Part shown: one piece after another, positions 5,301 through 42,319 of the stretch | Layout of the letters: each line of letters opens with the position of its first letter | Numbering within the stretch: the first letter of the stretch is position 1 | From: Macrostomum lignano | Taxonomy: Eukaryota | Direction of reading: 5' to 3' | DNA: 44,265 nt | Assembly: GCA_002269645.1 (NCBI GenBank) | Contig: NIVC01002588.1 | Span: 1-44,265, forward strand | Program-made: the position numbers and the translations under genes | The notes under the pieces: model-generated | What the model was told of the DNA's origin: nothing | Database searches by the model: none | What the model saw: the letters and a program-made list of their open reading frames with translations, nothing else

Positions 5301-8300
5301 CTATTTGCCAGCTTTCAGTCCGCCTGTTTCTAACTTTTATTTTTTCTAAGAAAAACAAGCACTTTCTTGGAAACTACTCTTGAAAGAGATTATTGACATA
5401 CCGTTCTTCCTGTTGACCTGATTCTGCGGAATGATAATTTGGGCGGACAGTTTGTCCCCAGTGTCCGGGATTGGGTGCCGTAGGATGCAGATAGCCCGGA
5501 TAACGCTGCCAACTTTGCGCACCCGATCCGTGGCATAGTTGGGATCGCAGATGACAGCTTTGCACTTGGCCACCTGGCCTTCGGACTGCACGCCGGCTAC
5601 GGCGCCAGTCTCGTCGAAGACAATCTCAGCGTCCGGCTTGTTGAGCATGTAGGTGCCGCCGTACACGGCCGACAGGCGGGCGAAGCCTTGCGGCAGTTCG
5701 CCAAGGCCGTACATCGGGTACAGGTAGGGCGAGCTGCCGTACCTGGGGAAGAGGAGAGGGGATTGAAACCAAGGCTGCTGGACGCTGTAGACAGTCGACA
5801 AGCATTCGTGCCCATTCTGCTGACCCCTGAGAACGAGACCAGAGTTTCTCATCATCTCATCAAAGTAGTACGGAAACAAATCAAAGTAGATTTCAAGGAT
5901 ACATGTAGCTTATTAAAAAAACGTGTATTGCATTTCTTTGGCTCCCCAACACGGGCGTAGATTGCTAGTTTCCTGTACCTAAAAATCATAAAAATGCATG
6001 GCAGAGCTTGACTCTTTGGTTTCATGAATATATTTTATCTATCATCTCTGTTACACACAGTTAAATAGTCAGCTAAGAATGATAAAATAGGTTCATAAAA
6101 CCAATCAGCCGAGCGTGCAATTTTAATGGTTATTAGGCACAGGGCATGTACAATTGTACACATGCACCCACTGTGTGATCTTGGGAGGTTTAGTCCTAAA
6201 CGGACGTGAATCGCAAGTACAGGCCCCTCCCCTCTAACCAATTTTCGTGTACGCGAGAGAAAATTTGCAGGTGACGCTAATTTGTAGTTCATGTGTGCCT
6301 GCATTATCTGGGGATGACACTTTTAATGCTTTGTTACTAAAAAAAAGATAGCAAAAATTAATACTAGAAACTACTGTATACTATACTGTATACTATAAAA
6401 ACATAGTTTTAATAGAAAATTGGCTTGAATTCCAATTGTTAAAAATGCTGAAATACCGGCATATATTGTTTCTATTAGTTGTTCCGTACATTAAAGTGAT
6501 ATTAAAGTACACGGTATATAATATTTATAGTACAAGGTATACAATTTAAAGTACACAGTATACAATTTAAAGTACACAGTATACAATTTAAAGTACACAG
6601 TATACAACTTAAAGTACAAGGTATACTATTTAAAGTACACAGTATACAACTTAAAGTACATAGTATACAACTTAAAGTACAAGGTATACTATTTAAAGCA
6701 CACAGTATACTATTTAAAGTACACTGTATACTATTTAAAGTACACAGTATACTATTTAAAGTACACCAATTTTTAAAGGGTTTCCGATAGATAGCTTAGT
6801 ATTAAAACACACATAGTTACCTGGCCAGCGACTCGCTGTACAGCTTGATGCGCCTGATGGCTTCAATAGCCGGACTGCTCATATATCCGTCGTTAAGATA
6901 CAGGCAGATGGCGTGCCCAGTGAAATCGGTGGTGTTCTGGTCGACGCCGAATTTATCGTAGGCGGCCTTGACCGTGTCCTTGTGAATGTCGATGCCCTCC
7001 CAGGTGGCGCGGTTGTTCTCGTCAATGTTCTGCGCCCAGATGAGGAACTTGCGGAACCTGGATAAGGGGTGCGAGATTGAGAATGAAGTAAGCCAATTAT
7101 TAAATTTTTTGTTGGAAGACTTCAAATAATCTGAGGCTCGTTAGCTGCTTAACGCTTGGGGGAAGCAGGGAGTCAGTGACCCCTGAAGTATCGGAGGGTA
7201 GCAGGGAGTCAGTGACCCCTGAAGTATCGGAGGGTAGCAGGGAGTCAGTGACCCCTGAAGTATCGGAGGGTAACAGGGAGTCAGTGACCCCTGAAGTATC
7301 GGGAGGGTAGAGGGGAGTCAGTGACCCCTAAAGAATCGGAGGGTAGCAGGGAGTCAGTGACCCCTGAAGTATCGGGAGGGTAGCAGGGAGTCAGTGACCC
7401 CTAAAGAATCGGAGGGTAGCAGGGAGTCAGTGACCCCTGAAGTATCGGGAGGGTAGAAGGGAGTCAGTGACCCCTGAAGAATCGGAGGGTAGCAGGGAGT
7501 CAGTGACCCCTAAAGAATCAGAGGGTAGCAGGGAGTCAGTGACCCCTAAAGAATCATAGGGTAGCAGGGAGTCAGTGACCCCTGAAATATCGGGAGGGTA
7601 GAAGGGAGTCAGTGACCCCTGAAGTATCGGGAGGGTAGCAGGGAGTCAGTGACCCCTAAAGAATCAGAGGGTAGCAGGGAGTCAGTGACCCCTGAAATAT
7701 CGGGAGGGTAGAAGGGAGTCAGTGACCCCTAAAGAATCGGAGGGTAGCAGGGAGTCAGTGACCCCTGAAGTATCGGGATGGTAGAAGGGAGTCAGTGACC
7801 CCTGAAGAATCGGAGGGTAGCAGGGAGTCAGTGACCCCTAAAGAATCAGAGGGTAGCAGGGAGTCAGTGACCCCTAAAGAATCAGAGGGTAGCAGGGAGT
7901 CAGTGACCCCTGAAGTATCGGGAGGGTAGCAGGGAGTCAGTGGCCCCTGAAGTATCGGGAGGGTAGCAGGGAGTCAGTGACCCCTAAAGATTTGGGAGGG
8001 TAGCAGGGAGTCAGTGACCCCTGAAGTATCGGAAGGGTAGTAGGGAGTCAGCGACCCCTGAAGTATCGGAAGGGTAGTAGGGAGTCATTGACCCCTGAAG
8101 TATCAGGAGGGTAGAAGGGAGTCAGTGACCCCTGTAGTATCGGGAGGGTAGAAGGGAGTCAGTGACCCCTGTAGTATCGGGAGGGTAGAAGGGAGTCAGT
8201 GACCCCTGAAGTATCGGGAGGTATCAACGAGTCAGTGAAACAGAGAGAGAAACTGTACACATGCAGAATATTGTATAAATATTAAATTCTGACAAACCTT

Positions 8301-11300
8301 CGCTTCTCAAACATGCCCATAAGCGAGCTGGCTAGGGCCTCCTTCTCGTTGCACGGCACCTTGTGAATCTTGCCGCCCTTGTAAACGTAGCTACCCTCAA
8401 CGCTCTTGAACTCGAGGTAGCGAGTGACGCCAGTGAATAGCAGCAGCTTGACCAGGGCGCCGTTGGCCATGAGAAATTTGGGGATTAAGTCAACGTTCCA
8501 GTCACGGAATTTCTCCAAATAGGCTGGCGGATCGCCCATCTTGAACATGCCAAACAGGTCATTCAATGGCGTGATTGAAGCGCTGTCTCCGCCATAGTAA
8601 TTATTGCGGTCCATGTGCAGCACCTTCTTGCCACTGACTGACATCAGACCGCTGAGAATGCATTCCTGTTTGATATTTTTGTAGAGATGATAGTTTATTA
8701 ATAGTGTGGCACATGGGTTTTTAAGGATCAGAAATTGCCTGATTCTGGATCCAAACTTGCACATTAAAATTGTATCAGATATCATTACATTACTATTTAG
8801 TAATGTTGCAAGCTAACCCAAACTCTATATAAATTCTTTTATAATGCATTAGGCCTACAGTGTAGTTAGTTAATAACATACTAAGGCTATACAAAAACTT
8901 TTATTAATCTTATTTACACTATAAAAGGCTAGTAAAAAACCTAGTAAACTAAAACAATTTGTTTCAATCAAAACTTCAACCAAAAAATAGGTAATCTAAC
9001 CTCATTAAAAAACTAATAGAAAAAAAGTAAAACAAAGAATAAAAATTTCTGGAAAGATTGACACTTTAAATTTTAGGATTTTTTTGTTTTGAAAAGAATA
9101 TATTGTAAAAAGTTGGATGTATAGGCCTAAGTAATATTATTTTTGGTATACATTTTTCTTGCTTGCATAAAACAAAAAACTAGATTTTTTATCTTAGCAT
9201 AAGCCTGCCATGATCCAGACTATGATGTTGCCTTCTTTCTAATTTTACATTGCATGCAGCCTGTCAAGCCATTTTTAGTCTTAGTGAAAACTGGTTTGCA
9301 TTAAGTCTACAAATACTCTACTAAAGCCAAAGAAAAGTGGATTTAGCTAAATAGACACAAGGCCTTGTTTTGTTAAATAAGAAATACTTTTTTTAAAAAA
9401 AAATTTCAAATATTTTTAAATTTAACCATTTTATTCTTAGTATTTGTATAGCAAGTTTATCACTTTATTTAGATGGTATTTATTTTAAGTGTTGACCATA
9501 AAAATAACCATCTTACTATTTATATGGTCACAATAACAATAAAAACTGCCTAATGTTAAACTTACCATTATATATAAAAGTCAAAAGTAGTGATGGATCG
9601 AAATTATTTTTCAAATCGAAATCGAAATTAAAATTTTCGGTTCTTTAGAATTGAAATCGAAATCGAAATTTTTGAGCTTAACAAATTTTTACTTTTTCGC
9701 TAATCATGCAAAAAGGTTAACACCTTGCCTCTGCATGTATGAGCTTACATGTTTTATAAAAAGTATCTTTGATATGTTTAAACCAGAATACAGAAAGATT
9801 TAACTTACTTTAAAAATACGAAATAGAAAATGCTAGTGTATTATGTATTATACACTTGTACATAGAAATATAGTAGAAGTTGTATTATACTTATATCCAT
9901 TTCAAAAGTCTTTAGCTAATTAAAATCCACGCCGATGAGTTCAGCCAGTGGGCTTGTGGAGGTTGAGGTGGGTGCAGCACAAGGCCTGGAACAGAGTGTG
10001 TCCCGCACAATCTTTCTTGTAGAAAAGGCGATTCTCACCTCCCCACTGAGTCTTTGAACCGCACTTCCTTTCACTTCCTATAGATTTTCTTTCTCGTGTA
10101 GCATAATCATCAATGTCTAAATTGTTAAAATATAACCAAAATTTCGAAATGATTTTTGATGAATGGTGTCGAAATTCGAAATCGAAATCGAAATTATTTT
10201 GATGCAAAATTAGCTTCGAAATTTGGAATATCAAAATCGAAATCGAATTTCAATCCATCACTAGTCAAAAGCCTGTGATTCTTTCTGTACAAGTGCACAC
10301 AAGCATATACCTTTGGTAATGGCTAGAGTTCCAGCACTGGAACCCATTTTCTAATAGCTAGGGATCTAGCAGTGCCATATAGAAGCATATAAAGACTGCT
10401 AAGAACATATCTTAAGAAGTCTGAATACTAGAAACATCTCATCTTGAATTTTATCATATCATCTTAAATTTTAATCTAGAAAAAATCTTAATATTAGCCA
10501 CCTATAGAAAGAAAAATATAATGTTTTATCTATATTATAATGGCACTGCCGGCCATAGTCCGGATCATGTTGAATGCATGCCAGAAAAAAAATTGTGAAA
10601 AATTTGTTTGCACGCCAAGGATGCAGAGTTTTTTCAAATTGCACACCAGTTCACGCCAATGTTGCACATCAGGTAGCGCCAATAAAGGGGCAGCGTGATA
10701 GAGAATATAGGCAATTGTCGACTTCCGTGACTTGACTTGATAATATGGATAATAAATTTGTATAAAAAGACGTAACACATTTTTTGCTTTAAAGAGACAA
10801 ACTTGCTTCCATTTTTGTATTTACCAAAAAGCAATATTAAACAGAACAATTTATTTTTTTATAGTATTTACATTCCAATTTACAAAACTTAAAAATGTTT
10901 TTACAGATAACAGAACATTTTGTTTTAGTCATGCAAAGTCTGTTATTTAATTGGTTAATATTTATAATTGTACATACAGATACATGAAACACATATTTGA
11001 TCTCTTTTTTAATGCAATATACAATTGCACGCTAAACCATTGCCATCCATGCCATGCACGCCTTGCATGCCAAAGTGTATGCTAACCCCTTAAAATATAT
11101 ACCAATGCACGCCATGCATGCCAGCTGAAAGCAAATGCATGCCAGAAAATTCCGGGCGCACTACATGATCTGGACTATGGACTGCCTAATCTGTATCCAT
11201 TAGAAAATGGGTTCTAATGCCAGAACTCTAGGCATTGCCAATACCTTTACTAAAAGTATATAAACACAAGTATGCATAGAATTGACAATATATAATTATT

Positions 11301-15239: not shown

Positions 15240-15999
15240 TGTACCTGATCAAAAAGCTGCGCACAGAGAGCTCGCTGGTTCGATATTTTGCCCAGTTAAG
15301 CTCTGCTAATTCTTGAAGCTGCTGATACTGCATTTTCTGGTGGTGCGTTAGCAGTTTGCTCGTGCACCAAGGCAGTGTATATTGGCACCAGCTGAGCCTC
15401 CTTGTGCAACAGTTCCATCAGAGGGTAGAGTGTCAGCTGATTTTGCTCCACCCTCTGCTGCATGTGACAGTGCCAGCCTTTAACTTTGTTGTTAGTTCAG
15501 ATAGCCTGGCCAAATACGCTGATTTCTCTTATGCCATGCACTAGATTCTCTAGCCAAGTGCTGCTGACGTATTCAGCCAGGTCGAGCAGTTCGGCAACTG
15601 CACCCTAGCAATAGTCTGGGCCAGGCCTTCTGCCATGTGTTCAGCTGGCAGATACGGCAGCGCCATTAGCATGCGGCAGAACTCCAGAGTGCCAGGATCA
15701 GCCAAGTAGGCTTGCTGGAGGCCCTGCTGCTGCACCTGACAGAAGATTGCTTGGCCATAGTGAAAGAGGCAGCCCTGCAATTTTGCATGGGGAAAAAGAG
15801 TGTGCAGAGACTGCCATACAGCGGCTTCAAAATCCAGAACACAGGCCTCTGGCATGGCTTGACCAGCAACCAGGGTTCTCAGCACATTAAAAATGGCGTT
15901 GTAGTTGTGAATAGACTTGCCTGACATTATAGTGAAGACAAGCAGGACATTTTTTAGGTTCATTCCTTGGCGCAAGTAGCAGTTGATAGAGTACAACAC
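15240..15999 (-). mobile_element. MULE (Mutator-like) transposase remnant, frameshifted
   Basis: ORF 15550-15999 has ...CVLDFEAAVWQSLHTLFPHAKLQGCLFHYGQAIF...FCRMLMALPYLP, with the DFE and GCxFH motifs of the MULE domain. Another frame gives TNNKVKGWH near 15470-15500, a degenerate RTNNxxEGWH. Confidence 0.8.
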
Positions 16000-16851
16000 A
16001 ATGTCTTAAAAAAACAAAATCATGTGCATGTTGGGGGTGATGTGGGAGGGGAGGAGGGGTTTTGTTCTAACTTTGAAAACTTTTGTTTTATAGATGACGA
16101 AGTGTCCACAAGTCTAAGGGTCACTTCGTCATCCACCCTCTGAGATATTGGACAGATCGTCATCTGGATGACAAAGTTATAAGATGACAAAGTATCCAGG
16201 TACTGTTTGTGTTTAGTTTGTGTATTCCCATTAAATGTTGCTACTATATTAAACTTTTTTATTATAACATATATCATGGTGTAGCTCAAAGTAATTGTTA
16301 TTACTATGTTTTATGACTTTCCATTGAAGTCACAGTGTGACAGTGTCATTTTAACATCTTGCTAACTTTCTATCCAAAATCAATATTGTTATTATTATTA
16401 TCATTATTACATTTTGGATTTTGCAAGTCTCATTTGCCTCAATTTTAGGGTCATTTGATAATTTTAAGCAAAGCCAACAGCTAAGCAAATATTTAAAACA
16501 AACCCTTTTAACAATTAAAAAGTTTTAACAAAGTATTCAATACTATTTGATATTTAGTAGTTTATTTAAAAGATTTGTAAAAAAGAAAACAAAAAAACAA
16601 TTTTTGCAAGCAACTTTTTTAAAATAAAAAAAGGAATATATAACTAGATGTATATATATACTGTAAAGTCATATAGATATGACACAACATATGACAATCA
16701 CTTAAAACAAAAAATACAATACAATAGTAGATTTTTAATTTAAAAAAATATAAAACTACATATAGCATGCTAATAAATTATATGTAAATACCATATCCAA
16801 AAAGATCTCTGCGGATTTTTGCTAGAAACAAAATCACTAATTGTCTATGCC

Positions 16852-23223: not shown

Positions 23224-26200
23224 ATGACCAGTTCACCGCAGCAAGCTCAACAAGTGCCAAATAATTTGGCCGCCACTACGCCTATTGGCGATGGCGACCC
23301 AACAGACGTGACTGGTGAGTTTCTTAAAGAATAAGACATTTAAAGCAACCAAGCATCAGCACTGAAAGCAACTCCCCCCTTTAGCATTGGCATCTCAGCA
23401 ATTCCCCCCTTTAGCATTGGCAGCATCTCAGCAATTCCCCCCTTTAGCATTGGCAGCATCTCAGCAATTCCCCCTTTAGCATTGGCAGCATCTCAGCAAT
23501 TCCCCCCTTTAGCATTGGCAGCATCTAAGCAATTCCCCCCTTTAGCATTGGCAGCATCTCAGCAATTCCCCCTTTAGCATTGGCAGCATCTCAGCAATTC
23601 CCCCCTTTAGCATTGGCAGCATCTCAGCAATTCCCCCTTTAGCATTGGAATCTCAGTATCTCAGCAATTCCCCCCCCCTTTAGCATTGGCATCTCAGCAA
23701 TTCCCCCCCTCCCTTAGCAATGGCATCTCAATATCTCAACAATTCCCCCGTATGAGCAACAAGTGCATGATATGCCAACAGGCACCCGTGAAACACAATA
23801 CCTACCAAACTCGTACATTATAGAAGCGTACATCTTTGACGATGATTGTTACGTACCAGCTTGCACGTGACGTCATTATGAGGGTTGGTTCTTTGGTTGA
23901 AGTTATCTATTTATTGCCGCAAGCACTACGGCAGGGCGGACTAGCGACAGGTCCGTGTGCATGCTTAGCTAACTAGACAGACTGAAGAATTCTGTTCTAA
24001 CGAGAGTAGAGTTAAGACTGAAGCTAAAGGAATTCCAGCTTTGGGCCGCCATCTCTCGCGCTAACAAAGTTTCCTTCAGTTTTCTTTCGTAACTAGTCAT
24101 TATTTTCTTTTTTATCACCGGCTTATCTGCCTCAAAAGATAAATAAGTTTTGTTTTAAAAAAGGAAACGTTTTGTTTCTAGCTATGGGGCTCTGCCAAGC
24201 TAATTAACCTTTTTTTTAAAGTTTATGCTGTGTTGCTGAAAAATCAGTTTATATGCAACATGTCCAATTGCGCTACTGTCAGTAGTTCTATATTTATCTA
24301 TAATAATTGCATTTCGTTCATTCCAGACGCCCAGTCGTGCCTGTCCTACTTGAAGTCGCGCGAGGTTTTCCTCTACAAAATGATGGGCGACCCGGCGCAC
24401 CGGTCTATGCTCTATTTTCTTGAGGTGCTCATGAATGTCGACTCGCCCGACGGCGTCCGCCTGACGTCGCTGTCGCAGCATTTCCACAGCCGGCACTTCA
24501 CCCAAGACATGCGAGAGGCCGTGGCCTCGGCCGGCGGGCTCAAGCCCTTCCTGCAGAAATATCCGTCGCTGTTTCGAGTGAACGGCGAGTCCGTCTCTGC
24601 CGTTAGTCTGGACGGCGCACTCTCGCAGATCAGCGGCGATACCGCGGCGACAGCGGCCTCGTCGTCTTCGTCGAGTTCGACGATGGCTGCCGCGGCTGCT
24701 CAAGCGGCAGCTGCGGCGGCGGCGGCTTCATCATCTGGCAGCGGCCGCTCGCAGCATCACAACGGCGGCCGGCGCGACTCCATCGGTTCGAACAACTCGG
24801 CCAGGTCCGGCTCCGACGCGGCCGCCGCTTTGCACTCGGTTAGCGGCGATCCGAACGACTTCGCCCGCGAGACTGAGGCGGTCCGGTTCTTTCAGACCCG
24901 GCTTAGCCGGCGCGAGGACCGCTGGGTGCCAATTAAAAGCTTAGCCGGGCATCTCAGCCAGGCGCCGCCAGAGATTCGAGCCGTGGTGGGACCGCAGGCC
25001 GAGTTTGCCAGGTTTCTGGCCAGGCATCGGCACGTGTTCGAATTGCAAGGCGAGCTAGTTGGCTTGCGGGACACGTTTGCTGCGCACTGCCTGAGCGGCG
25101 GCGGCGGGGGCGGCAGCGGGGGCGGCGGCTCCTCGCAGCGGCACCAGCAGCAGCAGTTGCAGTCGAGGAATCGCGGCAGCGGCAACCTCGGCGGCGGCCT
25201 GCATCACTCGCAGTCGGCTCGAATGGCCCGGCCTAAGAGTCTCGTTATGCCAAGCTGCTCTGGCGATCAGCGTAGCTCAGGTGAGGCATCCTTTAGTAGC
25301 TATTCTCGGTCTCATAGATCAGAATATGGATCTCCTAGATCCGATTCTAGACCTACTAGATCCGATCCTAGACCTGCTGGATCCGATCCTAGACCTGCTG
25401 GATCCGATTCTAGACCTACTAGATCCGATTCTAGACCTACTAGATCCGATTCTAGACCTACTAGATCCGATTCTAGACCTACTAGATCCGATTCTAGACC
25501 TACTAGATCCGATTCTAGACCTACTAGATCCGATTCTAGACCTACTAGATCCGATTCTAGACCTACTAGATCCGATTCTAGACCTACTAGATCCGATTCA
25601 GACCTACTAGATCCGATTCAGACCTACTAGATCCGATTCTAGACCTACTAGATCCGATTCTAGATCTACTAGATCCGATTCTAGACCTACTAGATCCGAT
25701 TCTAGACCTACTAGATCCGATTCTAGACCTACTAGATCCGATCCTAGACCTACTAGATCCGATCCTAGACCTACTAGATCCGATCCTAGGTCTACTAGAT
25801 CCGATCCCCATTTCGTCTGTCAGAGCACTGCTATCAATACAGTTTAACACTGTCCCGATTGTCCAACCCGCAGGCAAGTCGCTGCCAACAACGCCAACAT
25901 CAACAGCTGGCCCTGGCGGCAGCAGCGGCGGCGGCCTCTCCAGCAGCATCAGTGGCGGCGCCGGGCCAGTCAGCATGACGGCGGCCGAATACAAAACTGT
26001 CATGTTTCTGCGCAAAGTGCTCGAACGAAAGGGTGGCTTATTGTCCATACCGCAGCTGTTCTCCGTATTGTCTAGGTAATTCGGCTATTTTATAACTCTT
26101 TGTTTAGTGTAATAGATGGGCTTGCCGCTGGAGTTTACATTAGACTAGTTTACAGTAGAAATCAAATGTCTACATATATATACAGTGCTACGGATGCCAT

Positions 26201-29200
26201 TGCGGTGGTTGCTTTTGCAGGCGTTTTCTGCGCAAATTCCAATCAGTTTTGGGATCGGGAGGGTTAGGGGAGGGGTTGGGCTGAAGTGGCGGCGCTGCAG
26301 CCTCTATGCAGCGGTTCACGTGATGCGAAGATGCGCATTCATTTAGTTGCCCCCCTCTCTCTCAGCCACTGGATTAGAGAGGCTTTAAGCTTCTAGATAG
26401 GAAAAGTTTTAAGCTACGTCAGTCTCTTACTGGAATTTTCCTGCACTTTATGCGCGTATGAATATACGGATTTTTGAAATAGCAGCACCTGGGTAACTGG
26501 GTAGCCAGGACTGGCATGACTCATTGCTGATGGTCTACGCATCTATGGACTGTTGAACCTTAGTCAAAAATGGAAACAAAAGCTGTCGATTTCTCCTCTC
26601 AGATCTTTCGTGTTGGAACGTGTCGAAGTTCGCTTAAATATTGTTGACAACGCGTTGTCCCAGCTTGAAATGCTGCCAGCTCGATGATGTCGCAGATTCT
26701 TTTACAGACATTGCTTAGCTGCGTTCTATTTTTTTCTAGAAATTTATTCGAACGCCTTTCGGTAGAGAAGACTTGCTAGTTTGTTCTTGAATACTCGATT
26801 CTTTCAGTTTCCCACTCCTATTCTCCGTTTCCATTGCCCCTGATTACGCCCTCCTGATTCTTCTTCTTCGTTTCAATCCTCCCCCTTTCCGCTCTTCTTC
26901 GTTTCAATCCTCCCCCTTTCCGCTCTTCTTCGTTTCAATCCTCCCCCTTTCCGCTCTTCTTCGTTTCAATCCTCCCCCTTTCCGCTCTTCTTCGTTTCAA
27001 TCCTCCCCTTTTCCGCTCTTCTTTGTTTCAATCCTCCCCCTTTCCGCCCCCTTCTTTGTTTCAATCCTCCCCCTTTCCGCCCCCTTCTTTGTTTCAATTC
27101 TTCTCTTTCTGCCCCTTTTATTTCCAATCCTCCCCTTTCCGCCCCTTTTAGTTTCAGTCCTCTCCTTTCCGCCCCTCTTATTTCCAATCCTCCCCTTTCC
27201 GCCCCTCTTAGTTTCAGTCCTCTCCTTTCCGCCCCCCTTCTTTGTTTCAATTCTTCTCTTTCCGCCCCTTTTATTTCCAATCCTCCCCTTTCCGCCCCGT
27301 TTAGTTTCAGTCCTCTTCTTTCCGCCCCCCTCTTTGTTCCAATCCTCCCCCTTTTCCACCCGCTCTCTCCGTCCGCCCCCTTCCCATGCCGATTCGAGCT
27401 CGCCAATGAAGCTCGCTTCCTGTTACTTTTATTCGGCCAGGTCCGGCGAAGGCGCCGAGCAGGCCCGCAATCTAATCGGCTGGACTCAGATCGAGCTGGA
27501 AGAATTCCTGCGCAAACAGTCCCTATTCTTCGACATTCACCCGGCCGACGGCTCAGTGTCCTGCCGGCGCGCCCAGAAGCTCAACATCATCATCACCGGC
27601 GGCCGGCGCTCCAACCGAGACGGCAAGTCCGGCGCCGGCGGCGGCTCTGCCGGCGTAGATCAAACCGCGCCCCGGACGCTGACCAATCGCCGCGGCCGAG
27701 TGTTCCACTGCGCCAGACTGTGGGGCATCATCGATCTGGGCCGGCACGAGCACGTGTTCTTTGACAAGTCCATCTTTAAACACGTGGACGATTTGCAGAA
27801 GCACTTTAAGGTGAACTAATTATACTAAGGCATTAATTCATTTTAGAATGCCATTTATAGTGGAATCCATCTTTTGGACTCCATCAGTTTTATTCCCTTC
27901 TTTACTCCACTTTCCACCCCTACCAGACATCCGCCCCTACGTTCCTCCGCTCCTCATATCCCCTTTTCGTCCGCTCCTGCCCTCCACCCCTTCATCCGCT
28001 CATCCGCCCCTTCATCCGCTCCTGCCCTCCACCCCTTCATCCACTCATCCGCTCCTTCATCCGCTCCTACTTACTTACTTACTTACTACTGACGGGGGGG
28101 CGCAGGAGCCGCGAGGCCCCTATCGCAACCCCAAAATAAAAGAGCACAAGGATTAACCTTGGGGGTGCGCCCAGTCCCCGCCTGTAGTCGGCAGGTTTGC
28201 AGTGGAGGCATCGGCGACCCTAATCTGGCCGGAGTCCCGGATGAAGGCGCGAAGGTCACGGATATTGTCCGGGGTGGTCAGCTCGTCCATCCGCTGGGGG
28301 TGGCCGAGGTATTTGTGCCGCGCCTTGTTGAAGTAAGGGCAGAAGGTGACGTGATGCTCCGCGGTCTCCTCTCCTATGCCACAGAAAGGACAGGTGGGAG
28401 GGCAACCGGTTTGCAACGATATATGTCTCTGGAAGAATCCATAGCCGGTTAGGACCATGCACATCTCCCTGAGGTCTGTTCTGTTAAGCGAAATCAGATA
28501 ATCAGAGACTTTCCTGTTCAGGTTAGGCATGGCAGAGCGGGTTTGCCTGTACTCGGTGCAGCTGTTCCAGTGGAGCTGGTGCTGCTGATGGAGCCACCTG
28601 TTGATATGGCGGGTGACTTGCGACCTGGGAGTGGGTAGCCTCATCAGACGGTGGTTGCCGTCTGGGTTGCTGCCCTCCTTGGCGAGAGAGTCCGCGAGCT
28701 CGTTGCCCAGGATGTTGCTGTGACCAGGTGTCCAGATAATTCTAATCCTGTTAAGGACTGAGAGGGATTGCACACTGCGGTGGCATTGATATACTGTAGC
28801 AGCGGAGATATTCTCAGTGGTTAAGGCCTTAATAGCGGCTTGGCTATCAGTGTAAAATTTAATATTGAAGTTATTAATATTCACCTGGAGCAGGTGCTGG
28901 GCGCACTGCTCAATGGCGCAAATTTCTGCTTGGAAAACCGAGGTGTTCTCACCGAGGTGCAGACTTTCCTGGAAGAGCATCTTACCCTCGTGGAAAATGA
29001 CAATACCCGCTCCAGCGCGCCTCATCCGCTCCTATCCTCTGCCCCTCATATCCGCCCCTCCATCCGTATAATCTAGCCTATTTAACCGCCCCACTCCAGA
29101 TGAACGAGATTCTGTACTTCAACGCCATCCTGGCGCCAAAGGAGAGCCGCGCTAAATGGCGCGCTACTCAGGTTTGGAAGGAGGCCGACCGAGCCGTGAT

Positions 29201-29621
29201 GGAGCGCCTGTCCGGCGGAGCCCTGACCGCCGCCGCCTCGGCCGTCAAGAGTCCGCTGGGCCCCGAACCGCTGGACAGCCTCGAGCTGGCCGACGATATC
29301 AAATTCCTGTCCGACATTGACGAGACCGAGCTGCGCCGGGTGCTGCAGGACGACGCCGACAGTCGGACTAGCAGCTCCGTGCCGTCGCCTGTGCTGACGC
29401 CCGACCTCTCCGAAGGCAAGGATGAGCCGCCGCCGCCACCGCCGCATCAGCAGCCGCCGCAGCCGACGCCATCGCGTTCGACAAGCGGCGGCTGCTGCTC
29501 GCGTTGTCAGGCGCCAACTACGCCGGCCGCCTGTAACGGTGGTAGAAAAATGGTCACTATGGCAACGCAGACTCTTAGCACGGGCGAGATTATGGCTACT
29601 CAGATTTTTCACGATCCATGA
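23224..29621 (+). CDS. Egalitarian-like winged-helix repeat plus cold-shock/OB-like protein; exons 23224-23314 (tentative), 24327-25280, 25874-26075, 27441-27810, 29100-29621 (about 712 aa)
   Basis: Repeat 1 ([10 protein letters not shown]...LTSLSQHF...[30 protein letters not shown]) and repeat 2 ([10 protein letters not shown]...[36 protein letters not shown]) resemble the N-terminal repeats of Drosophila Egalitarian. A third repeat spans exons 3/4. [26 protein letters not shown] resembles a cold-shock RNP1/RNP2 pattern. Splice phases 1,1,2,0 are all consistent. The first exon is less certain; Met at 24380/24383 is an alternative start. Confidence 0.85.
23365..23748. repeat. About 33-bp minisatellite in the first intron of the Egl-like gene
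   Basis: AGCAATTCCCCCCTTTAGCATTGGCAGCATCTC units with variable C-run. Confidence 0.9.
25335..25806. repeat. 21-bp intronic minisatellite
   Basis: TAGATCCGATTCTAGACCTAC, about 22 copies. Confidence 0.95.
26853..27350. repeat. 30/31-bp pyrimidine-rich intronic minisatellite
   Basis: TTCTTCGTTTCAATCCTCCCCCTTTCCGCTC and variants. Confidence 0.9.
28070..29021 (-). mobile_element. 5'-truncated non-LTR retrotransposon (RNase H plus CCHC-type C-terminus) in an intron
   Basis: Uninterrupted ORF: AGAGIVI...[10 protein letters not shown]...[12 protein letters not shown]...[21 protein letters not shown] (RNase H), then [18 protein letters not shown]. (TAAG)n tail at 28070-28088. 13-bp TSD TCATCCGCTCCTA at 28057-28069 and 29022-29034. 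Confidence 0.92.
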
Positions 29622-29742
29622 GCTTTAGAGACACTTCGGTTGAAATGCTGAACTTCACCAGCTGTCTGCTGCTCTGGTTTTTATATGCTTCTGTGATCTG
29701 TGACCCCATTCTACAATGTCCTAGACTAAAACTCCAATCCAC

Positions 29743-30647
29743 AATGTCTGGGAATCGAACCCCAAACTTCAATCTTGAGGAGTTTAACTCCAACCCATAA
29801 TGTCTGGGAATCGAACCCCAAACTTCAATCTTGAGGAATTGAACTCCAACCCACAATGTCTGGGAATCGAACCCCAAACTTCAATCCTGGTAAATGAACT
29901 TCAACCCTCAATGTCTGGGAATCGAACCCCAAACTTCAATCTTGAGGAATTGAACTCCAACCCTCAATGTCTGGGAATCGAACCCCAAACTTCAATCCTG
30001 GGAAATGAACTTCAACCATCAATGTCTGGGAATCGAACCCCAAACTTCAATCTTGAGGAATTGAACTCCAACCCTCAATGTCTGGGAATCGAACCCCAAA
30101 CTTCAATCCTGGGGAATTGAACTTCAATCCACAATGTCTGGGAATCGAACCCCAAACTTCAATCTTGAGGAATTGAACTCCAACCCACAATGTCTGGGAA
30201 TCGAACCCCAAACTTCAATCTTAAGGAATTGAACTTCAACCCACAATGTCTGGGAATCGAACCCCAAACTTCAATCCTGAGGATTTTAACTCCAACCCAT
30301 AATGTATGTCTTGAAATCGAACCCCAAACTTCAATCCTGGGAAATGAACTTCAACCCTCAATGTCTGGGAATCGAACCCCAAACTTCAATCTTAAGGAAT
30401 TGAACTCCAACCCACAATGTCTGGGAATCGAACCCCAAACTTCAATCCTGAGGATTTTAACTCCAACCCATAATGTATGTCTTGAAATCGAACCCCAAAC
30501 TTCAATCCTGGGAAATGAACTTCAACCCTCAATGTCTGGGAATCGAACCCCAAACTTCAATCTTGAGGAATTGAACTTCAACCCACAATGTCTGGGAATC
30601 GAACCCCAAACTTCAATCTTGAGGAATGAACTCCAACCCTCAATGTC
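29743..30647. repeat. 56-bp satellite (28+28 dimer) carrying tRNA B-box-like motifs on the - strand
   Basis: AATGTCTGGGAATCGAACCCCAAACTTC + AATCTTGAGGAATTGAACTCCAACCCAC. The reverse complement contains GGGTTCGATTCCC and GAGTTCAATTCCTC. Confidence 0.93.
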
Positions 30648-34269: not shown

Positions 34270-34717
34270 GTGAGGGCGGAGAGACTAGAACGCATGAGCA
34301 GCACAGGAGCATGAAGAAGAACAAGTGAAGCTGGGAGGTGGATAAGGTGAGCTCTATCTGCTAGTATATAACAGAGGCTTGAGGCCGGCCCGTGCCGCGC
34401 TCTGAAATATGGAGAAGAAGTAGCTAAAAGAGGATGGGGAAGAGGGCAGGGACAGGACAGCCGATGGGAGTTCCCTTGCCCGCGCCCTCTGCCAGCAAAA
34501 GAGATTTTTGAGCCAATGAAATCTGTCGAAGCAGAGCACGAGCAAGCGAAAGGACGAAACTGTTGTGAATTTGAGCAGTGCGCTGTGGGAGGCGGGTGGG
34601 GCCAGGAGAAAAGAGGGGAAACCCGGGCGGAGACGAAGAGATTTTTTAGGGATGCCGCGCGTTACGCCTCTCGGCAGATTCATCCCGCAGTGAATTTGGC
34701 ATCCATTGACAACTCGA

Positions 34718-37054
34718 ATGGATGTTGGAGCTCTGGCGAAAGCCTGCGCCGACCTGACGCACAGCCTGCGCAGTCTGCGACGTCCGGGCAGCAGCAGCGG
34801 CAGCGGCGTAAACAACAGCGCCGGAAGCGTGGAAGCAGCGGGCCCGCCGCCATCCAGTCCCGTGGCGGCGCTGAAACTGCGCTTCTTCAACTTCGGCGGC
34901 GGGCAGCAGCAGCAGCAGCAAAAACAGCCGACATCGCCGCCGCCGCCGCAGCAGCAGCCTCGGCAGACGCCGCGCCACCATCGCCGCCATCTGGCCAGCG
35001 GATTACTTCACCGCTGCAATCAGCGGCCGTCCGCCCCGGACCCCGCCGAGCTGGCGTCAAGCGGCTGGCTGGCCGAGCGGCTGGCCGCCCACTGCAGCCC
35101 CTACGAGGCCGCCCGCCTCTGCCGCGTCTGTCCGGCCTGGCGGGACGCCCTCTACCGCCTGAGCTTCTGGCGCCACCTCCGCCTGCTGCTGCCGCTGCGT
35201 CTCGTCCCGCCCGAGGCCGCCGACTCAGACGCCGACTGGTCGGAGTCGATCGACCGACTCTTCGCCAGCATTGCCGAGCGTCGCATCGACTCGATCGGCT
35301 TCTCCGGCCTGACTGACGCCCACCTGGACAGCCTGCTGCCCCGGCTCGCCCACCTGGCCGGCCGGATTGCCGACCTGGCCGTCATCGATTCGCCTCTGAC
35401 CGACTCCGGATTGGCCGCCCTGCTGGCCGCCGGCGGGCCGCTGGCCGCTCTGAGCCTCACCGGCTGCAACCGGCTGGCCGAGCCGACCGCGGCCGCTTGC
35501 CGCCTGCTGTCTGGCAGCCTCGCCAGCCTCTCCGTGTCGGACTGCGCCGGCCTCACCGACCAGAGCGTGGCGGCGCTGGCGGCCCGGCTCGGCTGCCTCA
35601 GGCGGCTGGAACTGCAGGGCTGCCACCTCACAGACTGCTGCCTGCCTTGCCTGGCCGACTGTCCGGCCGGGCTGCTCAGCCTCGACCTGCCCAGCTGCTG
35701 GGAGATCACCGACCGGGGCGCCGCATCGCTGGCCGCTGCTCTGCCCGGCCTTCGGCGGCTCTGCCTGAACGGCTGCTCCAAGCTGACAGATGAAGCCGTT
35801 GACGCGCTGGCCGACGGGATGCGGCAGCTGCGCGAGCTGGACTTGGGCTGGTGCGCCCGCCTGACGGATGTGGCGCTGGAGTGCATCGCCTGCGATCTGA
35901 CACAGCTGGAGGCTCTGTGGCTGGACAGGTGGGCCGGGGTGACAGTATTGTGTCAGGATGGAAGGAGCCGGGTTGACAGTATTGTGTCAGGAGGGAAGGA
36001 GCCGGGTTGACAGTATTGTGTCAGGAGGGAAGGAGCCGGGTTGACAGTATTGTGTCAGGAGGGAAGGAGCCGGGTTGACAGTATTGTGTCAGGAGGGAAG
36101 GAGCCGGGTTGACAGTATTGTGTCAGGAGGGAAGGAGCCGGGTTGACAGTATTGTGTCAGGAGGGAAGGAGCCGGGATGACAGTCTTGTGTCGGGAGGGA
36201 AGGAGCCGGGTTGACAGTATTGTGTCAGGAGGGAAGGAGCCGGGTTGACAGTATTGTGTCAGGAGGGAAGGAGCCGGGTTGACAGTATTGTGTCAGGAGG
36301 GAAGGAGCCGGGTTGACAGTATTGTGTCAGGAGGGAAGGAGCCGGGTTGACAGTATTGTGTCAGGAGGGAAGGAGCCGGGTTGACAGTATTGTGTCAGGA
36401 GGGAAGGAGCCGGGTTGACAGTATTGTGTCAGGAGGGAAGGAGCCGGGTTGACAGTATTGTGTCAGGAGGGAAGGAGCCGGGTTGACAGTATTGTGTCAG
36501 GAGGGAAGGAGCCGGGTTGACAGTATTGTGTCAGGAGGGAAGGAGCCGGGATGACAGTCTTGTGTCGGGAGCGGAAGCGAAGTGAGAAACACACACGAGT
36601 ATAAAGAAGCCACACTAGGAAATACTAGATGTAAGGAAAGATGTGAAGTTTTCAAATAATAAGCGCAAAGCAAAAAAATGAAATTTGTCCAGTGAGCTGA
36701 GCTGGGATTTTAGGAAAGTTGCAATGTCTAATTACTGTTCATGTGACAGTGAGGCATGTGAGTATGCATATGAGCAACACAACAGATGTGCTCAATTACA
36801 GCAATTAGCCACTGTCAAGCAGTTTGCTTCAGCAAGCAAATTATAGCCTTTGTTGGCTGCGGCCCTTTGGGTTGAATGCCTGTTCATGAGGCGGCAGTTA
36901 GAGCCGGCTGATGGGCCCTCAGCAGAGCAACCGCTGGTTTGACTACTTTCTTGGGCCGTCGTTTTTAATTTGACTCTTGAAAGTTTTTTCTCCTTTGTTG
37001 GGGGGGATCTAGCTTTTATCTACTGATGTTGCTGACTTGTGAGCCATGTGTTCT

Positions 37055-37116
<62 letters not shown>

Positions 37117-38670
37117 TAGACAGACATTCCGGATTAAAAATGTTTAACCCCGCCAATCGCAGGTGTCCGGCCATCTCGGACATCGGAGTTGGCTACCTGT
37201 CCACTATGCCGAAGCTGCGCCTGCTCAGCCTTCGCTGGTGCTCCGGCCTCAGCGACACCGCAGTCAGACACGCCACCGGGATTCGAACTCTGACCCAGCT
37301 CTCACTGTCAGGTAAGAAATGCCGATCTCAAGTTTGCCAATCTCGAAATAACTGTAAATATCCGTGAAATTTTGTAAAGGACTGCATGTATTCGTAACTA
37401 GCCTTTGAATGTCAGTAACTGTCTGTAAATGACTGTATTTGCCTTTATTTACAAGCTATCTGCTATTTACAAGCTATCTGCTATTTACAAGCTATCTGCT
37501 ATTTACAAGCTATTTACAAGTAAATAGTTCCGACCAGTATAAGGTTGTAGATAGCTCGTATCTCTAAATGACTGTGAAAGTCTGTAGATTCTTTCTATAG
37601 ATATAGATTCAATATGTGTCTGTAAAAGTTTGTAAATACCTGTAACAGTTTGTAGACATCTCTAACTACCTGTGAAACACTGTAATTGTCTTTATAAGTC
37701 TGTATCCCTGGCCCAGCCTCTTGAGTTCATCAGTAGCTTTCCACCGACTGACATCAGAGAGTCACATGAAGCAGCTGGGCAGCCGGTTCCAGAATTGCCA
37801 CAAGGCAGCAGAAGGCGACACAGCTGTTTCCTCTCCCGCTCCATCATCCCCTGGCTGCGGGGTGAACTATTTTCGTCAGTAGAATTACGCTACCCACCCA
37901 GAATTCCGGAGTTACTTCTCGCTTCCTTTACCACGAGTCCTCTGGTCCTCTCCCCTTAAGATAAAATTGAATTTCGTGGTCGCCTCTAACTCAACCGGTA
38001 GCCACCAACCGGTAGCCACCAACCGGTAGCCACCAACCGGTAGCCACCAACCGGTAGCCACCAACCGGTAGCCACCAACCGGTGGCCACCTACCGGTAGC
38101 CATCAACCGGTAGCCACCAACCGGTAGCCACCAACCGGTAGCCACCAACCGGTAGCCACCAACCGGTAGCCACCAACCGGTAGCCACCAACCGGTAGCCA
38201 TCAACCGGTAGCCACCAGCCGGTAACCCTCAACCCGTAACCACCACACGGACTACTTAAGTAGACTTAAGTATATAAACGACAATTAAGTAGTCCGTGAA
38301 CCACCAACCGGTAGCCATCAACCGGTAGTCACCAACCGGTAGCCATCAACCGGTAGTCACCAACCGGTAGCCACCAACTGGTAGCCACCAACCGGTAACC
38401 AATTAGTAAACCCTCCACCGGTAACCCTCAACCGGTAGCCATCAACCGGAAATCCTCAACCGGTAATCATCAACCAGTAGCCACCAACCGGTAACCACCA
38501 ACCGGTTCCCCCACCCCACAGGCGTCACCAAGGTCACTGAGGACGGCCTGTGCCACCTGATCCGGGCGCGCCGCCTGCAGTCCCTGGAGCTGACCAACTG
38601 CGCCGCGGCCAGTCGTGGAATTCGAAATTACCTTCAGCTACAGCTGCCCCATTGCCGAATATACTACTAA
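34718..38670 (+). CDS. FBXL16: F-box/LRR-repeat protein 16 homolog; exons 34718-35928, 37163-37311, 38522-38670 (502 aa)
   Basis: Degenerate F-box (EAARLCRVCPAWRDALYRLSFW). LRRs SCWEITDRG...GCSKLTDEAV...[57 protein letters not shown]...LSLSG|...LELTNCAAAS...QLPHCRIYY* are colinear with the FBXL16 C-terminus as recalled. Splice phases 2 and 1 are consistent. Confidence 0.9.
35936..36575. repeat. 34-bp minisatellite starting just after the FBXL16 intron 1 donor
   Basis: GGGAAGGAGCCGGGTTGACAGTATTGTGTCAGGA, about 18 copies. Confidence 0.95.
37056..37125. repeat. (GACA)n microsatellite
   Basis: GACA run about 40 nt upstream of the exon 2 acceptor. Confidence 0.95.
37991..38505. repeat. 14-bp minisatellite in FBXL16 intron 2
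   Basis: AACCGGTAGCCACC units. Confidence 0.93.
38246..38298. mobile_element. 53-bp ultra-short MITE-like insertion
   Basis: Perfect 14-bp TIR CACGGACTACTTAA / TTAAGTAGTCCGTG. 8-bp direct repeat AACCACCA at 38238-38245 and 38299-38306. Confidence 0.65.
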
Positions 38671-39245: not shown

Positions 39246-42184
39246 TCAGCACTCGAATTCTTTGTTAGTCAGGCACCTCAGATCGTTCATGAGGCCGTCA
39301 AGAGTCTTTGTCATGTCCTCGGTTGACAGCACGAACTGAAATGGGCACAAGTGAGGTTTGGATGCTTTATACCAGAGAGCATGTACACCATAGAGCATGT
39401 ACACCATAGAGCATGTACACCATAGAGCATGTACACCATAGAGCATGTACACCATAGAGCATGTACACCATAGAGCATGTACACCATAGAGCATGTACAC
39501 CATAGAGCATGTACACCATAGAGCATGTACACCATACAGCATGTACACCATAGAGCATGTACACCATACAGCATGTACACCATAGAGCATGTACACCATA
39601 CAGCATGTACACCATAGAGCATGTACACCATAGAGCATGTACACCATAGAGCATGTACACCATACAGCATACACAGTACACCATACGCTCGTACAGAAAA
39701 CACATATCTACATTATGGAACATGATCACCAATGGTACATACACTTCTTGACGTCTGACTGTCGAATGTGGATCCGCCGCCGCCGCCTCCACCAGCGCCG
39801 CCTCCGTTATATGCGCCGCCGAGGCCACCGCCGCTGCCACCGTCGCCGCCGCTGCCTCCGTTGCCGCCGTGCAGGCTGCGCGATGGACGGGCAACGGGCG
39901 GGTTGAGAATGTCAGGCGTTACGTTGACTGAGCGACCGTTGCCTAGCGACGCCAGCATGAGCGTCGGTGCAGCTGCAGACGCCACTGCCGCCGCCGCCGA
40001 TGTAGACGGACGTCGCTTGGATGGCGAACCAATGGAAGAGCTGAGACTCGAGTGCGGGCTGGACAGCTTGCCTGCTTGCGAGTGGGAACGAGTGAGGGTG
40101 TAGCTTGTTTAGTTGTGTGCGGTGTAGCTTCCCCACACAACAGCCATGTACATTAACGCCCCCTCACGACACCAATGTACATTGACGCCCCCTCACGACA
40201 CCAATGTACATTGACGCCCCCTCACGACACCAATGTACATTGACGCCCCCCTCACGACACCAATGTACATTGACGCCCCCTCACGACACCAATGTACATT
40301 GACGCCCCCCTCACGACACCAATGCACACTGACGCCCCCTCACGACACCAATGTACATTGACGCCCCCTCTCGACACCAATGTACAACGAGGACCCCCCA
40401 CAACAGCCCATGTACACCAAGGCCGCGGCTCACCCGAGCTGAAGTCGGGCGCGTCAACTCGCGGCGGCGAGGCAAGGCCTCTTGACGAAGCCCCGATGGC
40501 AGCAGCAGCAGCGCCTGGCTGGTAGGACGGCGGCGTCCCCGGCGGGTAAAGCCCGGAGCTGGAGATGTTCCTGAAGTGTCCCGGTGGGTTCGGCGACGCG
40601 CCGCCCGGGTGATCGAGCAGCAGCGGCTCGCCCATGAAGCCGCGCCCGCCTCCGAGGCCGAGGTGGCCGCCGCCCAGGTGGTGCGGCGGGTGCACCGAGC
40701 TCCGGCCGAACGGTCCACCTACAGGGCCGTCAGCGCCACGGCCCGCCTGTGGAAGGTGCCGCAGCTCCAGGCAGTTCTCCGACCGGCGGCAGAGGTCTGG
40801 CGTCTGTTGCTGGTGCTGCAGCTGGTGCTGGCCTCCGCCTGTCGATATCAGCAGCGCCGCCGCCTGCGCGTCTGGCGAATTCTTGCCGGAACGAGCCCGT
40901 GGCGAGCCCGGGTGCCGCTGATTGGCTGCCGCCTCTTGACCAATCAGGCTCGCCTCCTCCTTGGCCGCCCGGTCCGCCTGTCTGCGCCGGCGGCCGCCGC
41001 CTCCTCCGGTGCCGCCCGCTGCCTCGCCGCTTCGACAGAGGCACACGGTTGCTATGGCAACAATCAGGAGCACAATCGCCAGGCCGAATCCGCCGCCGAT
41101 GACGAACCACAGCTTCCGGTCGCTCTCGGAATCCGGCGAGCTGGCCGCTTGCAGAGGGGGGTCGGCTGAAAAAGTAAGTTTAGCTACGCTATAGTATCGA
41201 TATTGTTGCTGAACTAAAGCTTGACCATTCACTTTATGCTTACATTGGGATCCTGATCCTGCAATTGCGTCAAGCACCATGCCGCCGCCGTATCCGTTTG
41301 CTGCGGGTTGGCAGTTTAAAGAATAACAAGCTTGATAGGCTGATGCAGTGCTAAACTGCTATCCTAGCCCCCATTTATCACCTCATTCCACAACCACCTC
41401 ACTCCGCAGCCACCTCACTCCGCCAGCCACCTCACTCCGCAGCCACCTCACTCCGCAACCACCTCACTCCGCAACCACCTCACTCCGCAGCTACCTCACT
41501 CCGCAGCCACCTCACTCCGCAACCACCTCACTCCGCAGCCACCTCACTCCTCGAACTCACCATCCGGCGTCATAAATGCTGTCAAGTTGGTGGCCGGCCC
41601 GACGCCCGCCTGGTTCTCGGCGCGCACCTTGAACACATACAGACTGGACTGCTGCAGGCCGGTGACAACAATTTGAGTCTCCTTAGCCGCGGCGTTGCGG
41701 CTGATGAACCGACCGCCGTGAGGAGCGTAGTACACTGTGTAGCCAGTCAGTGGCCCGTTCGGCTCCAGCGGCGGCCGCCAGGTGAGCAGCACGGAGCCGG
41801 ACAGGCTGGTGCGGGCCACCCGCAGCTCCAGCGGCGGCGTGCCCGGCGGCTCAGCCTTGGTGACGAAGGTGGCCACCATGCTGAAGTCGCTCTGCATGTA
41901 GCCCAGGTGGCAGCGGATCCTGGCCGCGTAGGCGGTGAACGGGCGCAGCTGGGACAGCCGCAGTCGAAGCCCCGTCGTGTTGAATCGGCGCGGTTTCGCG
42001 TCAACGACAGCCGAGGACGATCTGGACGAGGTGGCATCCTCGGCGAGTTCGACTTCGTAAAGGCGGCCGGCCGCGTCCGAGCCGGGCAGGCCGAGGTCCC
42101 GGTCTGTCCAGCTGACCACCGCTGTACGGCCGTCCATGACGGTGGCCTTCACGTTCAGCGGGACGCTGGGCGACTGCCGGTCGT
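39246..42184 (-). CDS. fra: Frazzled/DCC/neogenin-family netrin receptor, 3' part; exons 42184-41561, 41165-40434, 40071-39743, 39335-39246 (5' exons continue rightwards)
   Basis: Two FN3 domains (...LLTWRPPLEPNGPLTGYTVYY...YVFKVRAENQAGVGP), a TM segment (LWFVIGGGFGLAIVLLIVAIATVCLC) and the terminal STEDMTKTLDGLMNDLRCLTNKEFEC*, matching the P3 motif and ...EFEC end of Drosophila Frazzled as recalled. Phases 1,1,0 are consistent. Confidence 0.85.
39377..39672. repeat. 16-bp intronic minisatellite
   Basis: CATGTACACCATAGAG units. Confidence 0.95.
40145..40400. repeat. 29-bp intronic minisatellite
   Basis: AATGTACATTGACGCCCCCTCACGACACC units. Confidence 0.92.
41390..41550. repeat. 16-bp intronic minisatellite
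   Basis: CACCTCACTCCGCA(G/A)C units. Confidence 0.92.
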
Positions 42185-42319
42185 CTGCGGAAATTCGCGA
42201 GAGTGCAGATCTGTGGGAGCTGACAGGGCCAGTGTGAGCTGACAGGAAGAGCCAGTGTGACTAACAGGAAGAGCCAGTGTGAGCTGACAGGAGGGGCCAG
42301 TCTGAGCTGACACACTTCT

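Follow-up and report, generated by a model that had tools for sequence, protein, structure and literature searches.

We analysed a stretch of 44,265 nucleotides from the flatworm Macrostomum lignano (assembly GCA_002269645.1, contig NIVC01002588.1, forward strand; the window), in which a five-exon gene lies on the + strand at 23224-29621. The gene is M. lignano Mlig021118.g1 and belongs to the spiralian Egalitarian-like (Egal) family; its protein carries three N-terminal winged-helix domains of the type found in Drosophila Egalitarian (Egl), designated ED1 to ED3. From structure modelling we conclude that the central region of this protein is a predicted divergent cold-shock/S1-type OB domain. 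The main text of the paper that described the family (Miliard et al., Development 2025, PMC12579938) does not name the fold of the central region and does not use the terms cold-shock domain, OB-fold or barrel, and no fold is named in the legends of its Fig. S7-S8. Since no such fold is named there, the assignment seems to be new, and a divergent cold-shock/S1-like OB fold in the central region appears to be unreported so far.

In Table S3 of PMC12579938 the identical sequence appears under Mlig021118.g1 (PAA56698.1); the name Mlig021118 was found in the supplement of that paper and not in the main texts of the papers searched. Miliard et al. named the planarian protein dd_8302 Egalitarian-like-1 (Egal-1) and defined the spiralian Egalitarian-like proteins by a three-module N-terminal domain common to Egl, a central region and a dynein-light-chain motif (PMC12579938). 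The central region comprises 67-71 amino acids (aa), is more than 50% conserved in flatworms, molluscs, annelids and brachiopods and sits at the place of the Egl exonuclease-like domain, and the C-terminal dynein-binding motif is 75% identical to the Egl motif; the biochemical function of the central region was left unknown (PMC12579938). The Mlig021118.g1 protein has the three N-terminal modules, the central region and the C-terminal dynein-light-chain motif, and is counted among the family by the authors' own listing. Its central region is 52-80% identical to that of 24 family members and 65% identical to the Smed Egal-1 segment. Schmidtea mediterranea Egal-1/dd_8302, Egal-2 and Egal-3 have the same layout, but the Macrostomum copy has longer low-complexity linkers than the planarian proteins. 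An earlier reading of the window from its letters alone (the sequence-only reading) had proposed a distinct kind of RNA-to-dynein adaptor. The architecture is not new, because PMC12579938 had already described it with Mlig021118.g1 in its Table S3.

Fold of the central region

The domain occupies the following positions:

27673-29189, + strand: cold-shock domain (CSD)/S1-like OB domain, aa 494-569, interrupted by intron 4 (27811-29099); corresponds to the 'central region' of the spiralian family

The core of the domain is 76 aa long and is split by intron 4 at a K/M junction (27810/29100); the central segment quoted in the sequence-only reading is present and divided at that point. The AlphaFold2 model of the barrel (alignment of 32 sequences) has five strands, at model residues 38-49, 53-59, 62-67, 86-93 and 102-109, and a short helix between strands 3 and 4, with a predicted local distance difference test (pLDDT) score of 93-97. 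In the Foldseek comparison with the PDB, the listed matches were overwhelmingly OB folds and the best were CSD or S1 domains, among them CSD1-2 of Unr, the S1-like domain of DBC1 (8ez6, second best, target template-modelling score (TMt) 0.76) and the CSD of YB-1. Bacterial Csp matched with a TMt of 0.72 and a root-mean-square deviation (rmsd) of 2.5 Å, and further matches were the S1 domains of ribosomal S1, NusA and the exosome. The predicted five-stranded barrel resembles Csp and the DBC1 S1-like domain (TMt 0.72-0.76, rmsd 2.5-3.0 Å). A cold-shock/OB fold was also what the sequence-only reading had expected here, and the predicted CSD/S1-type barrel agrees with it.

The barrel is highly conserved, with 23 invariant columns in 25 sequences and the invariant motifs WGIIDLGxHEHVFFD and SRAKWRA. 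An exhaustive search with the barrel profile returned 157 representatives. When 63 distant barrel relatives were scanned, 51 matched the Egalitarian winged-helix family of Pfam (WH_Egal), 15 matched Pfam CSD (best E 3.2e-10) and none matched an exonuclease. In the tick protein P0125 (Haemaphysalis), the Pfam CSD match (113-175) coincides with the barrel-profile match (109-184). The precomputed entry Pfam PF26288 is present on some family members (P0007, P0009, P0012, P0016, P0017 and P0020) and may cover the central barrel or another part of the protein.

Several results weigh against the assignment, or against a canonical mode of RNA binding. The Foldseek E-values of the barrel are modest (4e-3 to 5e-2), a sequence search of the PDB with the barrel profile gave no CSD match, and an hhalign comparison with four canonical CSDs was not significant (probability 2.3%), with the strands in register. 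Moreover, the equivalents of CspB Trp8, Phe17, His29 and Phe30 are replaced by Val/Ile, Ile, Asp and Lys, respectively. Pfam CSD (PF00313) was not matched by the Mlig021118.g1 protein at E<=1. Because the protein itself has no Pfam CSD, hhalign or PDB-sequence match, the sequence link between the barrel and the CSD is indirect. At the positions of CspB Phe15 and Phe27 the barrel retains Trp and Phe, both invariant. Compared to Unr/CSDE1, YB-1, LIN28 and Csp, the barrel keeps this RNP1-/RNP2-like Trp and Phe, but most of the aromatic and His binding residues are replaced. RNA binding by the barrel is, judging from these residues, plausible but not assured, because the Phe15 and Phe27 equivalents are kept and the other four are not.

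The barrel might instead be a non-canonical CSD that makes protein contacts or acts as a spacer, with RNA recognition, if any, carried out by ED1 and ED2 alone; the non-canonical CSDs of Unr and the SIRT1-binding S1-like domain of DBC1 are comparable cases. We regard this as rather unlikely. The rank of the DBC1 domain as second-best Foldseek match, the replacement of four of the six classic aromatic/His RNA-binding positions and the lack of a Pfam CSD match in the protein all fit such a role, but they have to be set against the invariant Trp and Phe, an invariant surface rich in basic and His residues (HEH, SRAKWR), the more canonical GFI/VFF motifs and the Pfam CSD matches of ecdysozoan relatives, and the RNA-contacting module that Egl has at the same position of the chain.

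Gene model, winged-helix domains and tail

The gene model was obtained by reading three frames over 22.8-30 kb and joining the open segments at splice sites. All four introns are GT-AG, the exon phases close without any additional exon, the stop codon is TGA (29619-29621) and the product has 712 aa. Its exons and principal coding features are:

23224-23314, + strand: exon 1, putative, start ATG at 23224; MTSSPQQ...DVT; donor CTG/GTGAGT
24327-25280, + strand: exon 2, N-terminal conserved peptide, ED1, Ser/Ala/Gly linker, ED2 and Gly/Gln linker
24389-24601, + strand: ED1, aa 52-122, first Egalitarian winged-helix domain, Pfam WH_Egal
24869-25075, + strand: ED2, aa 212-280, second winged-helix domain, with GHLSQAP at 24947-24967, which includes the Ser-Gln pair matching Egl Ser127/Gln128
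25874-26075, + strand: exon 3, linker and first half of ED3; acceptor CCGCAG/GCA in phase, same as in the NCBI model
27441-27810, + strand: exon 4, second half of ED3 (to 27594), Gly-rich linker and OB/CSD-like strands 1-3 (from 27673)
29100-29621, + strand: exon 5, OB/CSD-like strands 4-5 (to 29189), short helix, acidic segment 29280-29348, Pro-rich linker and C-terminal tail 29544-29618
29565-29591, + strand: TQTLSTGEI, predicted dynein light chain (LC8) binding motif, within the last 25 residues

The NCBI protein BOX15_Mlig021118g1 (P0055; partial, 681 aa) is an exact suffix of the 712-aa model. Two other acceptors for exon 3, at 25824 and 25843, were rejected as they break the frame, while 25874 restores it and agrees with the NCBI protein. 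Exon 1 is putative and its start ATG at 23224 plausible: the NCBI model is 5'-partial and the UniProt model A0A1I8I3F0 (P0056) uses this start. An upstream ATG is needed because exon 2 begins with a peptide that planarian Egal-1 and Egal-2 have conserved. This peptide ahead of ED1 (24335-24385) is common to the two planarian proteins and is lacking in brachiopod, bryozoan and other homologues, which start with M..EPGHKAMLYF; on this comparison, it looks like a flatworm-specific extension. In A0A1I8I3F0 (under the name 'Phosphodiesterase I'), parts of intron 4 on the + strand, opposite the retroelement remnant described below, are treated as coding and the OB domain is broken up; this model looks like a mis-annotation.

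Pfam WH_Egal (PF23713) matched the protein three times (E 1.8e-37 for ED1 and ED2, 7e-15 for ED3), and no other Pfam match was present. Local hidden Markov models placed ED1 at aa 52-122, ED2 at aa 212-280 and ED3 at aa 380-467. The family profile matched Drosophila Egl (chain 9rvy_D) with E 2.9e-35; its ED1-ED2 part aligns with Egl residues 8-165 (domain E 5.6e-30, 33% identity), and ED3 and the last ~20 residues also align, weakly when taken alone (domain E 0.2 and 1.5). The AlphaFold2 model of ED2 has a pLDDT of 91 and its best 12 Foldseek matches in the PDB are all solved Egl chains (template-modelling score 0.80-0.86, rmsd 1.2-1.8 Å), with the winged helices of forkhead, La-motif and Z-alpha proteins far behind in the list. 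The three repeats that the sequence-only reading had described as winged-helix-like are thereby confirmed as being of the Egl type. Its further expectation of LOTUS-like membership was not borne out: the EDs are described as resembling LOTUS (PMC13186709), but LOTUS/OST-HTH (PF12872) scored 12.9 bits against a cut-off of 23.8 and no LOTUS structure was among the top 50 Foldseek matches of ED2. With the full-length family alignment as the query, low-complexity words dominated the search and Egl was not reached. An ED1-ED2 alignment including Egl returned short fragments only.

In Drosophila Egl, ED1 binds both BicD CC3 and the RNA minor groove; helix 2 of both ED1 and ED2 enters minor grooves of the RNA, where Ser127/Gln128 of ED2 contact bases (PMC13186709). 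The equivalent Ser-Gln pair of ED2 (SLAGHLSQA) is invariant across the family and Egl.

At the C terminus, the TQT-bearing tail noticed in the sequence-only reading is present at 29565-29591. The family tail ACQTISTGEIIATQLY aligns with Egl AESQTLSTGDVVITKIFF, which is the dynein-light-chain site of Egl (SQTLS), and the columns of the motif are nearly invariant in the family. The egl2pt mutations of Navarro et al. 2004 are reportedly S965K and S969R, both serines of SQTLS. Between the barrel and the tail, an acidic segment (29280-29348) is conserved in the family with the consensus S-I-E-E-E-I-N-x-L-L-P. It had been read as an acidic helix, of which the conserved acidic character stands and the helix does not, as the segment is not confidently helical (AlphaFold2 pLDDT ~53). 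The 60 residues modelled after the barrel contain one helix (model aa 110-121), and elsewhere their pLDDT is ~53; the remaining C-terminal part is Pro-rich and poorly conserved. Many family members also have a Y-x-D-A-x-x-S-x-x-G-x-I-P-V-W motif, which the Macrostomum protein lacks. Both this and the acidic motif may be linear motifs for partner binding.

A very unlikely alternative is that Mlig021118.g1 encodes a cytoplasmic translational regulator of the LIN-66 type, that is, a CSD protein working with eIF3 or the microRNA-induced silencing complex (miRISC) and not a transport adaptor. C. elegans LIN-66 is a cytoplasmic post-transcriptional regulator whose CSD is flanked by low-complexity sequence, and its function needs the CSD embedded in that sequence (PMC11184513; bioRxiv 10.64898/2026.07.07.737059). 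The Mlig021118.g1 barrel likewise lies between long low-complexity linkers, but both LIN-66 papers report no homologues outside nematodes, and the conserved ED1-ED2 and dynein-light-chain motif point to the Egl machinery. Neither paper mentions a winged helix, so the winged helices that the sequence-only reading attributed to LIN-66 are without a source in them.

Exonuclease searches, protostome relatives and surroundings of the gene

Compared to Drosophila Egl and C. elegans EGAL-1 (PDB 9RVY), the Mlig021118.g1 protein is alike in ED1-ED3, in the Ser-Gln pair of ED2 and in the SQTLS/TQTLS tail. Unlike Egl, it is without the exonuclease-like domain (ExoHD) and the exonuclease-adjacent domain (XAD), and the OB barrel stands between ED3 and the tail. 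No exonuclease domain (Pfam PF01612) was found in the protein, and none of the + strand open frames of 45 aa or more within its introns had an exonuclease match in Pfam. When exonuclease fragments of C. elegans EGAL-1 and chordate EXD1 (from a paper supplement) were used in tblastn, the best E was 0.57, on the wrong strand. PF01612 was also absent from all of about 70 full-length relatives scanned, including eight flatworm homologues of 900-1270 aa. The tetrahelical XAD of Egl was not found in the 60 residues modelled after the barrel, where there is only one helix. The observation in the sequence-only reading that no exonuclease segment is present therefore holds in every one of these searches.

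The barrel and its flanks are uninterrupted in ~50 homologues, some of them from short transcript-like Logan or JGI contigs, and because the stretch is continuous in these, no exon is missing at the split by intron 4. It is hardly credible that the missing exonuclease is an annotation artefact, with a hidden ExoHD exon or an assembly gap in an ordinary Egl: the locus is full of minisatellites, intron 4 holds a retroelement and the exon 2/3 junction had to be adjusted to 25874 to keep the frame, but this continuity, the relatives without PF01612, the negative intronic and tblastn searches and the closed exon phases all stand against it.

The full layout of ED1, ED2, ED3, barrel and tail was found in flatworms, Lingula, the bryozoan Watersipora, Seison and two acanthocephalans; the sequence-only reading had suggested looking for the architecture in other lophotrochozoans. 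Priapulus, the spider Parasteatoda and the centipede Strigamia have related proteins with 1-4 EDs, 2-6 CSD-like copies and a C-terminal [TSC]QT.[SF]TG[DE] motif. Proteins with ED and CSD-like domains are also present in a second spider, Stegodyphus, and in the ticks Haemaphysalis and Dermacentor; in these, the tail motif was not seen at the C termini as retrieved. The ecdysozoan proteins with ED and CSD-like domains are:

P0117/P0199: Priapulus caudatus, XP_014669431
P0118/P0200: Parasteatoda
P0124: Strigamia
P0125: Haemaphysalis
P0128: Stegodyphus
P0162: Dermacentor
P0100, P0110 and P0132: further proteins of this kind

All of them are annotated as uncharacterised; they are 750-1400 aa long, with 1-4 WH_Egal domains and 2-6 CSD-like copies, and several carry a QT.STG motif of the dynein-light-chain type at the C terminus. 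Some of their CSD-like copies match Pfam CSD, S1-like or DUF7930, and the barrels of the ecdysozoan relatives have more canonical GFI/VFF motifs. Taken together, the comparison of domains suggests a pan-protostome family with ED, CSD and tail. No description of such a family was found in the literature, and the occurrence of EDs, one or more CSDs and the tail in proteins of priapulids, spiders, a centipede and relatives of rotifers appears to be unreported so far.

The sequence-only reading held that an OB fold had taken the place of the exonuclease domain. As a description of the layout this is correct; as to evolution, replacement is only one of the possible directions, because ED, CSD and tail proteins are also present in ecdysozoans. 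It is possible, although we hold it with considerable doubt, that ED, CSD-like barrel(s) and LC8 tail are the ancestral protostome form of Egalitarian, that the ExoHD-XAD of flies and nematodes is a later replacement or belongs to a paralogue, and that the barrel binds single-stranded RNA.

Minisatellites lie in three introns of Mlig021118.g1 and just beyond its stop codon, and a retroelement remnant lies in the fourth intron:

23367-23708: 33-nucleotide minisatellite, intron 1
25335-25805: 21-nucleotide minisatellite, 22.5 copies (TRF), intron 2
26863-27350: 30-nucleotide minisatellite, intron 3
28156-29031, - strand: retroelement remnant, open frame resembling RNase H/reverse transcriptase, antisense in intron 4 (Pfam RNase_H E 3.8e-10, RVT_3 E 1.4e-4)
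29730-30647: 56-nucleotide minisatellite, just 3' of the stop codon

The 21-nucleotide array is open in several frames, one of which gives SDSRPTR repeats. We discarded a coding reading of this array, as the frames fail to join and the repeat is lacking in homologues.

Other features of the window are:

3221-8812, - strand: Rab GDP-dissociation inhibitor gene, two exons matching Pfam GDI (E 1e-58 to 8e-60)
15553-16005, - strand: open frame encoding a MULE transposase domain (E 3.4e-7); probably what remains of a DNA transposon
34694-36007 and 36981-37364, + strand: GC-rich gene with LRR_6-type leucine-rich repeats; its product resembles an F-box/leucine-rich repeat protein
41547-42260, - strand: exon with fibronectin type III domains (E 5.6e-21)
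40255-41358, - strand: open frame adjoining the 41547-42260 exon, with a transmembrane-like stretch; together with that exon probably a cell-surface receptor gene

Proposed adaptor mechanism and its meaning

By homology with the structures of Egl, BicD and RNA, the Mlig021118.g1 protein would be a dimeric cargo adaptor that couples structured RNA to BicD-dynein transport along microtubules. LC8 bound to the tail would aid dimerisation and ED1 would dock on BicD, while ED1 and ED2 of two chains would insert helix 2 into adjacent minor grooves of the RNA. The OB barrel would take over the third contact, which in flies is made by ExoHD-XAD, and would most likely touch a loop or flank of the RNA that is single-stranded. 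The relationships of sequence and fold were computed, and each step of binding is one that we infer. Membership of the Egal family and this adaptor mechanism, taken together, are in our judgement the best explanation of the data and somewhat more probable than all others combined.

Two further points count against the mechanism. The ED1 equivalents of Egl His31 and Cys35, which contact bases in Egl, are not conserved in Mlig021118.g1, where they are Thr and Gln. The dynein-light-chain site of Egl is dispensable for RNA binding and dynein activation (PMC13186709).

The studied planarian protein gives the setting in which such an adaptor might act. RNA interference of planarian egal-1 leads to ectopic notum at posterior-facing wounds, and colchicine or nocodazole have the same effect (PMC12579938). 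Egal-1 is induced in longitudinal muscle after wounding, not in the germline or neoblasts (PMC12579938). The role in germline or stem cells that the sequence-only reading had considered is without support; the sole family member studied so far has its action in longitudinal muscle, where wounding induces it.

Since both the gene and the family have been published, what remains of interest is the assignment of the fold and the broader distribution among protostomes. The wide spread of these proteins bears on how fly Egl gained a catalytically dead exonuclease fold. If the barrel provides the proposed contact with RNA, the class of signal that is recognised would differ from that of Egl; and if the barrel-containing form is ancestral and binds single-stranded RNA, Egalitarian-like adaptors would read signals made of a stem plus a single strand, unlike the bent stem-loops read by Egl. 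If the central region is an RNA-binding barrel of the CSD/S1 type, the Egalitarian-like proteins would be plausible spiralian RNA-to-dynein adaptors, including in the head-tail polarity of planarian regeneration.

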